Source: Hormiphora californensis
Taxonomy: Eukaryota > Animalia > Ctenophora
Reading direction: 5' to 3'
DNA length: 64,000 bases
NCBI GenBank assembly: GCA_020137815.1
Contig: CM035354.1
Location: 620,001-684,000 of the forward strand
Position numbers and translations under genes: made by a program. Under the pieces are notes generated by a model that worked only from the letters and a program-made list of their open reading frames with translations, was not told where the DNA came from and did no database searches. Positions 47,901-53,900 of this stretch are shown here, piece after piece (the stretch's first letter is position 1; the number at the start of each line of letters is the position of its first letter).

Positions 47901-50900
47901 GAATTTGAAATGGTTAGCCCAAAAAGGACAGTCAAAATCTTCACTAAAGCTATTTTCATAGTTTTGAAGACCAATTTACAGGGCCTGGTACACGTCCCGA
48001 GGCATTTTTATAAGAATCTACGGAAATAGGGAGATATAAGTAATACTATTACTTATATCTCCCTATTACTAATAGTATGGATAGTAATATCTGAAATAAG
48101 TATGGATAGAAGCCTTGTTGTTGTTGTTGGTATTTGTTAATACCCGGCGTTCTTTATCGTGATACCAATTGAGGCGATGATTGAATAGTGCCAGTGCAAC
48201 GTTAGGGCAATATTAGGACACTCAGTCACTAAATCTCATATGTTGGTGTGCACGTACCCTAACATGTGTTCTAGTGTCAGTGAGCTGATCCGCGATATAA
48301 TATTATCAGAATAATTAGGATTGGGATTTGGAATCCCAGACAAGTAATATCTCAACTTTTTACCTCCCGCACTGCATAATTATTATCTTGTGGCCTGTAT
48401 AGTACAGACCACCTAGGATAATAATGCAGTACGGGAGGTCAAATATCTAACATCACACTATTATGCATGTCACAAGAAACAATTCTGCAACACTAGATAC
48501 ATCAGTCACGAGATATAATCATAGAGCGGCCGACGATAATTTTAAAATTATGAAGTTTACTTTGGAAGTTCGATCGTGCGTGTCATTATATGCTTGGATT
48601 CATATAGTAAACAAGTACAAATGTGCATGTGTAATTGTATATAATTGGAGCACTGGGTAGATGATCTATGGGTTATAAGAAATGACACAAATCAGCGATG
48701 AATAAGTGATGTCGCTAATACTAATCAGTTGGATAGGATCGTATAGAGACAGAGAGAGGGAGAGAGAGAGAGAGAGAGAGAGAGAGAGAGAGAGAGAGAG
48801 AGAGAGAGAGAGAGAGAGAGAGAGAGAGAGAGAGAGAGAGAGAGAGAGTGAAAGAGAAAGAGTTAGAAAGAGTCGGGTAGTTAGATATATAATAGGAGGA
48901 AGAGAGAGTGAAAGAGTTAGAGAATAAGATGGGAGAAAGAGAGAGATCTGGGACACTTATGGCGAATATCGGCTCATGATCTAGGTCGAATATTCCTGTG
49001 ACACCCCGTGACAGCTGTTAAATATCCTAGCTGTACACGATAATATATCCCCATGTGCAGCTGAGAATCATCATAGCTTGACTTGCTCCGTGAGATCGAT
49101 CTCAGTCGCGCGCGACGTCGATCTCACTCAGGTATCAATGTGGCCAACTCATTTCTGCATAACGATCAGCGATTCTATGGAAATCTAAAACCCAATACCC
49201 ATATTCTGGTATATAACTTTGATATACCGAACCCCCGAAATGATGGGTGAGCTCCACACAAGGGTTTGAGAGAGGGTTACAAGATATACCTTGATAAAGG
49301 GAGAGTAAAACAAAAAGAGGTGATACATTCTTATCATGACTTATTCAGAACTCACGAGCACTCACACCCTGTCAGAGCATTGGCCTGACCCTATTCTCGC
49401 GAGAACTGTGGTCAGAGCATTGGCCTGACAGCTCACTCCAGTGTCGACCAAATCGCAATTACGAAAGAAGCGATAGTTCTTTAGGGTCTCACACCCGACA
49501 CTCCTAGAAGAAGAAGAATGACTTATGCAGAACCTACCCAGAACAACAACCTACCTATAGAACAACAACAAGAGTTTATCGACATCATCAAAGTTATTAG
49601 CTGATTGTGTCAGTGATGAGATGAGATTGCGATCACAATTCATCTTGGTACCAATGCAGTTCATGTTCATATACCTTACTGAGTCACGTGTTATTGAATA
49701 TTGACTTTGTTGATATTGACTCATGAACTTATAGAGTGGTAGAGGTATAGACAATTACTCGAATCCAATCTTATCATTTCATCTTATCAGATTCAGAGGT
49801 GCTCTATAGAATAAGAGCTGAACAGGTATTATATAAAGGGTGGGTCGGGCGAACTGATCCTAAACTGGCCAACACATGGTAACGAGAGCGGTGGGCTACC
49901 GTCTTGGCGTGCACTGTCACCGGTACATGTCAAATGGAAAGGGGGTGGACTATAGCCGCTGCATCTCGTTTCTGCCAACTAGTGTTACAACTGTACGGAA
50001 CCCTCCAGCTCCGATACCCTGTTTACAAGCCATACAGCAGGGATCTCGGCTAGATTCATCTCGATTAGGCACATATTGCTTCACACTATTAGCAGATTGA
50101 TCGTGATCTTATATCATGAATCTCTGATAGAAACAAACATTGTATTCTAACAAGAGTCGAATCAACCTTCTCATGTGTTAGTCAGTAGGCTCCATTCAGG
50201 TCTTTAACACAGTTCTCTCCCGTACAGTGCGATTAAACAACTGATATATAAAGGGTGGGTCGGGCGAACTGATCCTAAACTGGCCAACACATGGTAACGA
50301 GAGCGGTGGGCTACCGTCTTGGCGTGCACTGTCACCGGTACATGTCAAATGGAAAGGGGGTGGACTATAGCCGCTGCATCTCGTTTCTGCCAACTAGTGT
50401 TACAACTGTACGGAACCCTCCAGCTCCGATACCCTGTTTACAAGCCATACAGCAGGGATCTCGGCTAGATTCATCTCGATTAGGCACATATTGCTTCACA
50501 CTATTAGCAGATTGATCGTGATCTTATATCATGAATCTCTGATAGAAACAAACATTGTATTCTAACAAGAGTCGAATCAACCTTCTCATGTGTTAGTCAG
50601 TAGGCTCCATTCAGGTCTTTAACACAGTTCTCTCCCGTACAGTGCGATTAAACAACTGATATATAAAGGGTGGGTCGGGCGAACTGATCCTAAACTGGCC
50701 AACACATGGTAACGAGAGCGGTGGGCTACCGTCTTGGCGTGCACTGTCACCGGTACATGTCAAATGGAAAGGGGGTGGACTATAGCCGCTGCATCTCGTT
50801 TCTGCCAACTAGTGTTACAACTGTACGGAACCCTCCAGCTCCGATACCCTGTTTACAAGCCATACAGCAGGGATCTCGGCTAGATTCATCTCGATTAGGC

Positions 50901-53900
50901 ACATATTGCTTCACACTATTAGCAGATTGATCGTGATCTTATATCATGAATCTCTGATAGAAACAAACATTGTATTCTAACAAGAGTCGAATCAACCTTC
51001 TCATGTGTTAGTCAGTAGGCTCCATTCAGGTCTTTAACACAGTTCTCTCCCGTACAGTGCGATTAAACAACTGATATATAAAGGGTGGGTCGGGCGAACT
51101 GATCCTAAACTGGCCAACACATGGTAACGAGAGCGGTGGGCTACCGTCTTGGCGTGCACTGTCACCGGTACATGTCAAATGGAAAGGGGGTGGACTATAG
51201 CCGCTGCATCTCGTTTCTGCCAACTAGTGTTACAACTGTACGGAACCCTCCAGCTCCGATACCCTGTTTACAAGCCATACAGCAGGGATCTCGGCTAGAT
51301 TCATCTCGATTAGGCACATATTGCTTCACACTATTAGCAGATTGATCGTGATCTTATATCATGAATCTCTGATAGAAACAAACATTGTATTCTAACAAGA
51401 GTCGAATCAACCTTCTCATGTGTTAGTCAGTAGGCTCCATTCAGGTCTTTAACACAGTTCTCTCCCGTACAGTGCGATTAAACAACTGATATATAAAGGG
51501 TGGGTCGGGCGAACTGATCCTAAACTGGCCAACACATGGTAACGAGAGCGGTGGGCTACCGTCTTGGCGTGCACTGTCACCGGTACATGTCAAATGGAAA
51601 GGGGGTGGACTATAGCCGCTGCATCTCGTTTCTGCCAACTAGTGTTACAACTGTACGGAACCCTCCAGCTCCGATACCCTGTTTACAAGCCATACAGCAG
51701 GGATCTCGGCTAGATTCATCTCGATTAGGCACATATTGCTTCACACTATTAGCAGATTGATCGTGATCTTATATCATGAATCTCTGATAGAAACAAACAT
51801 TGTATTCTAACAAGAGTCGAATCAACCTTCTCATTACATTTGACATGTACCGGTGACAGTGCACGCCAAGACGGTAGCCCACCGCTCTCGTTACCATGTG
51901 TTGGCCAGTTTAGGATCAGTTCGCCCGACCCACCCTTTATATATCAGTTGTTTAATCGCACTGTACGGGAGAGAACTGTGTTAAAGACCTGAATGGAGCC
52001 TACTGACTAACACATGAGAAGGTTGATTCGACTCTTGTTAGAATACAATGTTTGTTTCTATCAGAGATTCATGATATAAGATCACGATCAATCTGCTAAT
52101 AGTGTGAAGCAATATGTGCCTAATCGAGATGAATCTAGCCGAGATCCCTGCTGTATGGCTTGTAAACAGGGTATCGGAGCTGGAGGGTTCCGTACAGTTG
52201 TAACACTAGTTGGCAGAAACGAGATGCAGCGGCTATAGTCCACCCCCTTTCCATTTGACATGTACCGGTGACAGTGCACGCCAAGACGGTAGCCCACCGC
52301 TCTCGTTACCATGTGTTGGCCAGTTTAGGATCAGTTCGCCCGACCCACCCTTTATATATCAGTTGTTTAATCGCACTGTACGGGAGAGAACTGTGTTAAA
52401 GACCTGAATGGAGCCTACTGACTAACACATGAGAAGGTTGATTCGACTCTTGTTAGAATACAATGTTTGTTTCTATCAGAGATTCATGATATAAGATCAC
52501 GATCAATCTGCTAATAGTGTGAAGCAATATGTGCCTAATCGAGATGAATCTAGCCGAGATCCCTGCTGTATGGCTTGTAAACAGGGTATCGGAGCTGGAG
52601 GGTTCCGTACAGTTGTAACACTAGGAACAGGTATTATATATGCCATGGAAAATAGCAAGCGAGGCACCAGAATTGAAATTGAAATCGAAGGCTATTTTTT
52701 CTTCCTATTTACATAATATTTAACTTTAAGTTAGGCAACAATTACAAACTACAAAATCGTGGAATACACACGGCGATCACGAGCAGAAAACCAAAGAACA
52801 AAAAAGAAAGGTTGTATCGTTTTCGACTCATGGGAGCCGGGCTGTAATGTGAATGTGACACATGAATTGCATTGTCATGAGTCACATGGAAACACGTTAC
52901 ACAATAAAACACATTGTACACGAGATATTATCGCGGCCGATCCGATTCTGTACAGGCAGTAAAATATGAAAAGCGTACCGAAAATATACTGGATTCTGTC
53001 CTGAAACATATGTGTGACCTATAATAGAGTTCGCTGTCTGAGCAAGCATTATAGTCCTTGTGCACTTGTGCACTATAGAAAAGCTAATAGGGAAATGGAA
53101 ACACAAGTCACAAAGTCTAGTAAGAACTCTAGGTACTTTACAAGTAAGTTGTTTGCACCTTTAGTATAGCGGCCTGGAGCTCAAAGCTAGCTATCACACA
53201 TATTACAATTGTTCAACCATCAACATACTTCCATTTCTTTTTCTCTCTCTGATCTCTCTCTCTCTCTCTCTCTCTCTCTCTCTCTCTCTCTCTCTCTCTC
53301 TCTCTCTCTCTCTCTCTCTCTCTCTCTCTCTCTCTCTCTCTCTCTCTCTCTCTCTCTCTCTCTCTCTCTCTTTCTCTCTCTTTCTCTCTCTCTCTCCCCC
53401 CACCCAGCTCCAAGCCCAATCTTGCTATACTGGTAAATTCTTTATACCTTCCTTGCCAATCTCGCAAACCAAACTGTCTATGTTAATTGTAATGCCACAA
53501 TATTGGATTATGTGAATAACAGTGTTGACATATTCAGATACAGGGTAGTCGATATTATATAGGTAGTATTCCCTAGGCTATAATACAAACCTAGAAATAA
53601 AGTCATAGAAAGCAATAGAATGAGAGCCCAGACAATATCGGAATATCAGCTGTTAATAGAGTCTATATTAGAGTCACGCTGACTCGATAGTATAGAATCA
53701 GCGTGACACAGTAGCAACTAGAAGACCTAACTCCCCCGGATTCCACTACTTTATAATACCCCCAGCACAACATTCCAGCACCGAATTTTCACATGACTGC
53801 GCTGAGCTTGAAACACGAGGCTCCATGCGCGAAGTAACTACTATATATGTCGAATATAATAGTGCAGCTGTACTGTAACTATAGTCCTAAAACTTCTGGT

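Follow-up and report, generated by a model that had tools for sequence, protein, structure and literature searches.

A dispersed family of two-armed tandem-repeat insertions in the ctenophore Hormiphora californensis, probably a ribozyme-free retroelement copied by a Penelope-like element

Penelope-like elements (PLEs) are recognized by partial tandems, an adjacent inverted and 5'-truncated copy, and a one-sided 'tail' of 30-40 bp, and their target-primed reverse transcription (TPRT) leaves target-site duplications (TSDs) of variable length (PMC8557442). Naiads, which are PLEs without a hammerhead ribozyme (HHR), have been found in ctenophores and prefer (TA)n targets, and non-autonomous PLE derivatives form multicopy head-to-tail insertions. 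The mechanism of PLE integration is undefined, and no in vitro system is available (PMC8557442). A derivation of animal retrozymes from PLEs has also been argued for (Li et al. 2026, preprint 10.64898/2026.07.22.740005). The present analysis concerns a block of 415-bp repeat units at positions 49820-52640 of a 64,000-nt stretch of the genome of the ctenophore Hormiphora californensis (assembly GCA_020137815.1, contig CM035354.1, positions 620,001 to 684,000 of the forward strand; hereafter the window), together with the dispersed family to which this block belongs. The block of 2.8 kb is best explained as a ribozyme-free, non-coding, non-autonomous retroelement that was inserted by TPRT from both nicked ends of its target, most likely by the enzyme of an active resident PLE. 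A probability of about 0.62 is assigned to this reading, in which an RNA intermediate, a PLE as the source of the enzyme, and a multimeric or circular template are inferred.

The block had been described from the sequence alone as about 6.7 identical 415-bp copies lying head-to-head around a 2-nt junction, and both Tandem Repeats Finder (TRF) and a BLAST search with the unit against the array confirmed this layout. According to TRF, window positions 49830-51834 on the plus strand have a period of 415 with 4.8 copies and 100% match, and positions 51837-52624 on the other strand contain 1.9 copies, again with 100% match. When the unit is numbered such that position 1 corresponds to window position 49836, the left arm runs from position 410 (TATATA, followed by AAGGG...) to position 339, and the right arm, in bottom-strand orientation, extends from position 144 to position 101. 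The 16-mer GAACAGGTATTATATA flanks the block perfectly and is the longest direct repeat of the flanks (16 nt; in shifted controls, 5.5 nt on average and 9 nt at most). Its final 6 nt, TATATA, are identical to unit positions 410-415, which is the microhomology described for the left junction and concerns end A of the element. The components of the block are the following.

49820..49835, no strand: left copy of the TSD, GAACAGGTATTATATA; its last 6 nt (TATATA) overlap unit positions 410-415; present as a single copy in the empty-site contig
49830..51834, plus strand: A-arm of 4.83 head-to-tail 415-bp units, 100% identical, from the canonical end A (TATATAAAGGGTGGG) to unit position 339; its RNA template would be the complementary (unit minus) strand
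49836..49978, minus strand: conserved 3' domain of the putative RNA, given for one unit, position 143 down to 1
49930..49950, plus strand: site B motif TCAAATGGAAAGGGGGTGGAC, arm start in 13 sister loci and stop of the right arm in the window
51835..51836, no strand: filler of 2 nt, TA, at the head-to-head junction
51837..52624, minus strand: second arm of 1.90 inverted units; its outer end is the non-canonical position 144 (site X) and its inner end is position 101, the canonical site B
52625..52640, no strand: right copy of the TSD, the second GAACAGGTATTATATA

A search of the genome (110.7 Mb in 45 contigs, 13 of them large) with the unit yielded 117 matches, equivalent to about 25-30 loci, and 20 family loci were fetched for detailed comparison. 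They fall into three subfamilies with units of 415 bp (97-100% identity to the window unit), 419/423 bp (~89%), and ~445 bp (~73%). At nearly every locus, and at all of those with more than one arm, a plus arm is followed head-to-head by a minus arm, and single arms comprise between 0.1 and more than 12 units. TSDs of 12-16 bp were clear at 12 loci, where the lower lengths allow for a boundary ambiguity of 1-3 nt and shifted controls reached about 5-6, and no microsatellite targeting was seen among these 12 TSDs. A dispersed family with such TSDs is not an ordinary satellite, in line with the original prediction. With its narrow yet variable length, the TSD rules out DDE transposases and fits TPRT.

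The outer ends of the insertions follow a strict rule. All 13 of the 13 independent canonical loci have one arm that begins at site A (TATATAAAGGGTGGG) and another that begins at site B (TGGAAAGGGGGTGG), which is located at about position 100 and thus ~100 nt further in. If the ends were chosen freely, the chance of 13 mixed pairs would be ~0.5^13, about 1e-4. Site A reads (TATATA)AAGGGTGGG and is ragged, with 0-6 nt of the TATATA kept, and sites equivalent to A and B are also present in the 445-bp subfamily. The inner ends differ at every locus and are joined with either 0-19 nt between them or an overlap of 3-4 nt; in the sister loci, the intervening 0-19 nt are partly filler and partly unit sequence left unaligned by BLAST. 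Fixed outer ends in combination with variable inner ends indicate fixed 3' ends with 5' truncation, and the template would accordingly be the complement of the written unit strand. The 3' ends of this template would be ...CCCACCCUUUAUAUA at site A and ...CCACCCCCUUUCCA at site B.

These results do not support the random circular permutation that the original prediction had proposed. It had named fixed ends shared by other copies as the observation that would speak against it, and this is largely what the canonical loci show: in the genome-wide comparison of start points, the outer ends turned out to be fixed rather than variously permuted. Within the window, the idea of unrelated start and stop points fails for the left start, which is the canonical end A, and for the inner end of the right arm at site B. 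The window copy is therefore slightly atypical, with its left arm starting from A and its right arm starting from position 144 and stopping at site B. The break at positions 143/144 recurs elsewhere in the family, since one arm at locus L036 stops at position 143 and a mosaic fragment at locus L050 resumes there. A number of other arms likewise end on site A or B or shortly beyond it (L033 at position 415, L035 at 13, L036 at 15, L037 at 102 and 105, and the window at 101). By a rough count, this applies to 8-9 of ~24 arms compared with ~4 by chance, which is suggestive only.

The architecture of the ends also bears on DNA transposons. In a foldback-type element (FB-like), a transposase would cut and paste long inverted arms of tandem repeats, and the family resembles such elements in its inverted arms of tandem repeats and in a similar motif, AAAGGG(T/G)GG, at both ends, which looks like an imperfect terminal inverted repeat (TIR). 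A short hairpin derivative of ~350 nt, in which positions 100-217 are joined to positions 232-1, recurs at three loci and could be read in the same way (L039, G000:C9:1492303-1492653; L041, C2:9865176-9865521; L043, C7:3459011-3459345). This explanation is nevertheless hardly credible: the TSD length varies between 12 and 16 bp, end A is ragged, with TATATA, TATA, ATA, or nothing before AAGGG, inner junctions and arm lengths are unique to each locus, the right end in the window lacks the motif, and no transposase is associated with the family. The fixed TSD length and defined TIRs of foldback or other DDE transposons were thus not found, and both were rejected. A Helitron was rejected as well, because of the 16-bp TSD and because the termini read TATATAAAGGG and ...CACTAG instead of the TC...CTRR termini that lie between A and T without a TSD. 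The inner junction of the hairpin derivative is identical at the three loci although their divergence differs (from 99% down to 84%), which indicates that this head-to-head composite was itself copied or duplicated as a whole. L041 and L043 additionally have left-flank sequence in common.

Variants that are private to a locus reveal how many templates took part in each insertion. At four sister loci, such variants occur in every copy of both arms (141C>T at L032, 326A>T and 327T>A at L033, 110insG at L034, and 171C>T at L039); the window copy has none. This indicates that each locus originated from one event and one template, without later local amplification, and it supports the earlier proposal that both chromosome ends were primed on the same template. 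Locus L031 is an exception, since the units of one arm follow the order a, a, b, a, with b being a variant found at L037. This order calls for template switching or for a multimer of mixed units; a circle of one monomer would by itself be insufficient.

For the window locus, the allele without the insertion was found as well. Logan contigs of four public runs were compared with window positions 49300-53200. A 991-nt contig of X1, a genomic run that is labelled with the organism of the window and possibly represents the source sample, joins position 49819 directly to position 52625 with a single 16-mer and 0 mismatches. The identical empty junction occurs in run X5, from another individual, where the haplotype deviates at 15 positions. 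The single 16-mer in these contigs identifies the 16-mer as a true TSD. The block is a real, recent insertion that is polymorphic or heterozygous; the empty allele that the original prediction had suggested looking for is present in read contigs of two individuals and, together with the identity of all 6.7 copies, it bears out the proposed single recent event.

It is barely conceivable that the block is an assembly artefact produced by mis-joined or chimeric long reads. The read contigs did give the empty allele only, without any filled-junction contig in X1; contig graphs drop low-coverage links into repeats, and a missing contig of this kind is no proof of absence. The published Hormiphora californensis assembly was made from CLR reads with a mean length of 2.7 kb (PMC8527503). 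If this is the assembly of the window, the reads are shorter than the array and the number of units stands as assembled only. The perfect 16-bp TSD, of which the empty allele has one copy, would not arise from an artefact, nor would the architecture, the end A, and the site-B stop known from more than 12 other loci; only the copy number could be affected.

The unit has no recognizable coding capacity. In a scan of the unit tetramer, the longest stop-free frame comprised 78 aa and no TTTT run was present, and the window block contains no poly(A), in agreement with the first description of the block. No tRNA-like part was detected by ARAGORN. A SINE was thus rejected, since neither a tRNA-like gene (ARAGORN) nor a tRNA-, 7SL-, or 5S-like head (Rfam) was found.

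Ribozymes were searched for in two ways. With Rfam at E<=10, none was found in the window array or in four loci of the 423-, 419-, and 445-bp subfamilies, where only spurious miRNA-like matches appeared at the inverted junctions. A regular expression for the hammerhead core (CUGANGA, 4-80 nt, GAAA; also in a relaxed form) matched neither strand of 8 unit variants. As a positive control, the same expression matches the 3' untranslated region (3'UTR) of a PLE in the flank of L032, in which a hammerhead-core-like CTGAAGA...GAAA motif is located ~190 nt past the stop codon. Rfam did not call this control motif, and the Rfam negative is therefore weak when taken alone; the absence of ribozymes is based on both searches together. 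Judged from its sequence, the family appears to be devoid of a hammerhead or any other known ribozyme.

This result is central to the comparison with metazoan non-LTR retrozymes, which likewise consist of tandem units of a few hundred nucleotides flanked by TSDs of more than 4 bp and for which a PLE partner and rolling-circle copying have likewise been proposed (Cervera & de la Pena 2020, PMC7229834; 10.64898/2026.07.22.740005). According to the original prediction, the block would be such a retrozyme or viroid-like replicon, meaning that a ribozyme cleaves the RNA, the product is ligated into a 415-nt circle, and the circle is reverse-transcribed in rolling-circle fashion from both ends. The 415-bp units and the 16-bp TSD in a metazoan host do agree with the ~170-400-nt tandem units and TSDs >4 bp of these elements (PMC7229834), an RNA-library contig crosses the unit junction (see below), and several arms stop on A or B or slightly beyond, at the start points of other arms, which might reflect RNA ends generated by cleavage. 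The label nevertheless has to be regarded as improbable to a high degree. The type I hammerhead that defines metazoan non-LTR retrozymes is absent from all subfamilies, with no Rfam ribozyme and no CUGANGA...GAAA core in a search that does recognize the PLE 3'UTR. In addition, the outer ends are fixed instead of permuted, the a, a, b, a arm at L031 is impossible from a monomer circle, and the inverted arms of the family lie outside the published descriptions of these retrozymes (PMC7229834; 10.64898/2026.07.22.740005). Folding-energy z-scores range from -0.5 to -2.6 for whole units and reach +0.5 for the 3' domain alone; such ordinary values indicate that the unit RNA is no viroid-like rod.

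A conserved structure of the putative RNA is nonetheless suggested by an alignment of 8 units from three lineages, which was folded in the RNA sense deduced from the fixed ends. The consensus fold contains 90 pairs, with 98.2% of cells paired and a G-U share of about 9% of the paired cells (counted by hand). Compensatory double changes affect 14 of the 90 pairs, compared with 0-2 after shifting the partners by 1-3 columns, and the best-supported helices, in which unit positions 112-135 pair with positions 46-69, carry such compensatory changes. The alignment folds better in the minus sense (-66.5 kcal/mol) than on the other strand (-54.3 kcal/mol). The model predicts a 143-nt 3' domain in which site B is apical, site A is located in the 3' tail, and the 143/144 break (site X) lies at the base.

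Transcripts of the unit may be present in X10, a marine metatranscriptome, in which two contigs are 100% identical to the unit and cover 382 of its 415 nt. One contig comprises positions 108-319 and the other positions 353-415 plus 1-109, the latter crossing the unit junction in a way that fits either a multimer or a circle (unstranded data). The single-copy flanks and a ~2000-copy repeat at window positions 49368-49431 are absent from this run, which suggests that the unit contigs represent RNA and not contaminating DNA.

An event at the DNA level, in which extrachromosomal circular unit DNA is copied from both ends of a staggered break by break-induced or rolling-circle synthesis, would also provide both arms with the same sequence and could account for the 6-nt microhomology at one junction and the filler at the inner junction. 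This explanation is very unlikely in view of the recurrent, sequence-specific starts A and B at independent loci, the narrow TSD range at about 12 loci, the bias of the structure to one strand through G-U pairs, and the presence of the unit in an RNA library. Moreover, the depth of unit words in X1 has the same order of magnitude as the assembled copy number, which, even though depth is no copy number, suggests that there is no large extrachromosomal excess.

The most likely source of the enzyme is a PLE of the same genome. Elements with a GIY-YIG domain are represented by 66 Pfam matches, and among close neighbours ~19 minus/plus pairs with the 3' ends outward, no plus/minus pair, and several same-strand tandems were counted by hand. 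Resident PLE copies thus have the same tandem and 3'-ends-outward inverted layout as the family, which points to a PLE as the likely enzyme. At least one PLE family looks active: the flank of L032 contains a C-terminal fragment of a PLE open reading frame (ORF) with a weak, sub-threshold Pfam GIY-YIG match (L032:4821-5600, minus strand; G000:C10:1289820-1290599), of which 99-100% identical copies occur at 8 or more loci. The family itself displays the features by which PLE insertions are recognized, namely a variable TSD, head-to-tail tandems, and an inverted 5'-truncated copy with fixed outward 3' ends.

A mechanism can be proposed on this basis. An endonuclease (EN) and reverse transcriptase (RT) supplied in trans, presumably the GIY-YIG EN and RT of an active resident PLE, would nick both target strands 12-16 bp apart. 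Each freed 3'-OH would prime cDNA synthesis on the element RNA, whose sense is opposite to that in which the unit is written. One end would normally start at the 3' tail (site A), and the other would start ~100 nt upstream at site B, in the apical part of the conserved hairpin domain. Each cDNA would then proceed for 0.1 to more than 7 unit lengths round a template that is multimeric or circular, and the two cDNAs would be joined head-to-head with a few filler or a few overlapping bases. In the window copy, the A-arm would have completed 4.83 rounds, and the second arm would have started off-site at position 144, completed 1.90 rounds, and stopped at site B.

Several observations weigh against the proposed PLE-driven insertion. 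An autonomous partner was not found: the 15-mer CAGTTTAGGATCAGT, an invariant part of the family's 3' domain, has 75 exact sites, which are located almost only in family loci, none of them is near the GIY-YIG matches that were compared by coordinates, and the 3' region of the PLE in the L032 flank, the sole one compared, has no similarity to the unit. One PLE copy (C8:2447252) is followed after ~800 bp by a site with 1 mismatch to CAGTTTAGGATCAGT; since this site is missing from further copies of the PLE family concerned, it was rejected as a candidate and attributed to chance or nesting. The one-sided extension of ~100 nt (positions 1-100 at 13/13 loci) is longer than the PLE tails of 30-40 nt. 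The structure is derived from three lineages only, and its minimum-free-energy z-scores are unremarkable. The evidence for RNA comes from one environmental metatranscriptome with unstranded data, and a transcriptome-like run of the species itself contains next to no unit words. Finally, contigs with the filled junction were not seen in X1 (Logan), an absence inferred from bin depths.

The missing PLE partner, as judged from the sites of the 15-mer and the one PLE 3' region, leaves some room for double target-primed copying by another RT, such as that of a resident LINE. Twin priming is documented for L1-type elements. There, too, both nicked ends prime on one RNA, and inversion, TSD, and filler or microhomology at the inner junction result; TSDs of 12-16 bp would also suit LINE endonucleases. 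In contrast to L1-type insertions, the family has neither a poly(A) nor a microsatellite tail, its second priming site is sequence-specific, and the template was copied for several rounds. In twin priming, the internal point at which the inverted arm begins is random; the family, by contrast, has canonical outer ends on both sides at 13/13 loci. Tandem copies together with inverted 3'-out copies characterize PLEs (PMC8557442), and the resident GIY-YIG elements display them as well. A LINE-type enzyme is therefore considered improbable, and a PLE remains the preferred candidate.

Comparison with described PLEs supports this preference. Canonical PLEs and Naiads resemble the family in their partial tandems, the inverted 5'-truncated copy with its 3' end outward, and the variable TSDs, and their one-sided 'tail' may have a counterpart in the one-sided extension of the family. 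Naiads in addition have no HHR, occur in ctenophore hosts, and prefer (TA)n targets, and the family ends in TATATA. In contrast to autonomous PLEs, the family has no RT/EN ORF, this extension measures ~100 nt and not 30-40, and no microsatellite targeting was apparent in the 12 TSDs. The closest parallels are non-autonomous PLE derivatives such as MRC1 and other non-autonomous Chlamys elements of Chlamydomonas, which are likewise non-coding, multicopy, and head-to-tail, do not need a hammerhead, and show a complex tandem and inverted structure, variable TSDs, and recent activity (PMC8557442). The family described here differs from them in its ctenophore host and in its strict insertions of one A-arm plus one B-arm with a one-sided extension of ~100 nt; furthermore, its kinship with PLEs is suggested by layout, and the 3' end that was compared (L032 flank) showed no similarity.

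As to the form of the template, one tentative and rather unlikely possibility is a ribozyme-free circular or self-templating RNA on which a Penelope-type RT initiates internally at two structured sites, A in the 3' tail and B at the apex of the hairpin, and proceeds by rolling-circle copying. If this were true, the strict A-plus-B pairing would explain both the 'tail' and the inverted copy of PLEs, and multimeric retro-insertion would need no hammerhead. It is less likely still that sites A, B, and X represent an undescribed self-cleaving motif. Under the favoured PLE-driven reading, the family provides a clean set of natural insertion events, including an identical concatemer whose empty site is still found in read data, and the pairing of start sites and the rule of a single template are clues to the unexplained mechanism of PLE integration. 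Multicopy retro-insertions would form without a hammerhead, which bears on the role of the ribozymes in PLEs and animal retrozymes. The family appears to be active and polymorphic in a ctenophore, a lineage with few descriptions of such elements.

Some further observations concern individual family loci. The inverted arm of the largest 423-bp array is split at unit positions 277/278 by a stretch of 1.36 kb (L036:4425-5788; G000:C3:8711424-8712787), which is probably a later insertion of another element. A large, older two-arm array of 440-445-bp units (L044; G000:C2:9971564-9977867) is situated about 1-7 kb from the end of a 9.98-Mb chromosome-scale contig. The minimal insertion of the family (G000:C4:4535943-4536010) comprises ~68 bp, with positions 1-39 joined to inverted positions 43-13; it forms a near-perfect hairpin of site-A ends only, and its junction is also found in run X5.

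Relatives outside the genome were sought with a conserved 19-mer. It had no match in IMG/VR and one match in JGI metagenomes, which covers 20-21 nt only on a contig with 56% GC that is probably bacterial and is attributed to chance. A BLAST search with the unit (word size 7) against the fetched sequences retrieved only a 28-nt hairpin motif (GATAGAAACAATCCTTGTGTT...), which is carried by both arms of a head-to-head foldback insertion of an unrelated family (L032:3680-3990). The motif is 86-93% identical to positions 297-324 of the 445-bp subfamily and may be a module common to different retroelement families.

The repeat at window positions 49368-49431, upstream of the array, is an element of ~64 nt that holds GTCAGAGCATTGGCCTGAC twice. 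In X1, its summed word depth exceeds the value of the single-copy flank ~2000-fold, and numerous contigs end at its borders; it may be a very high-copy MITE-like repeat. Finally, X5 contigs on window positions 49837-52243 contain extra head-to-head junctions at roughly single-copy depth that are not among the assembly matches (about plus position 92 / minus position 158, plus 132 / minus 30, and plus 144 / minus 110). With matched sides as short as 21-31 nt, they weakly suggest further polymorphic insertions of the family.

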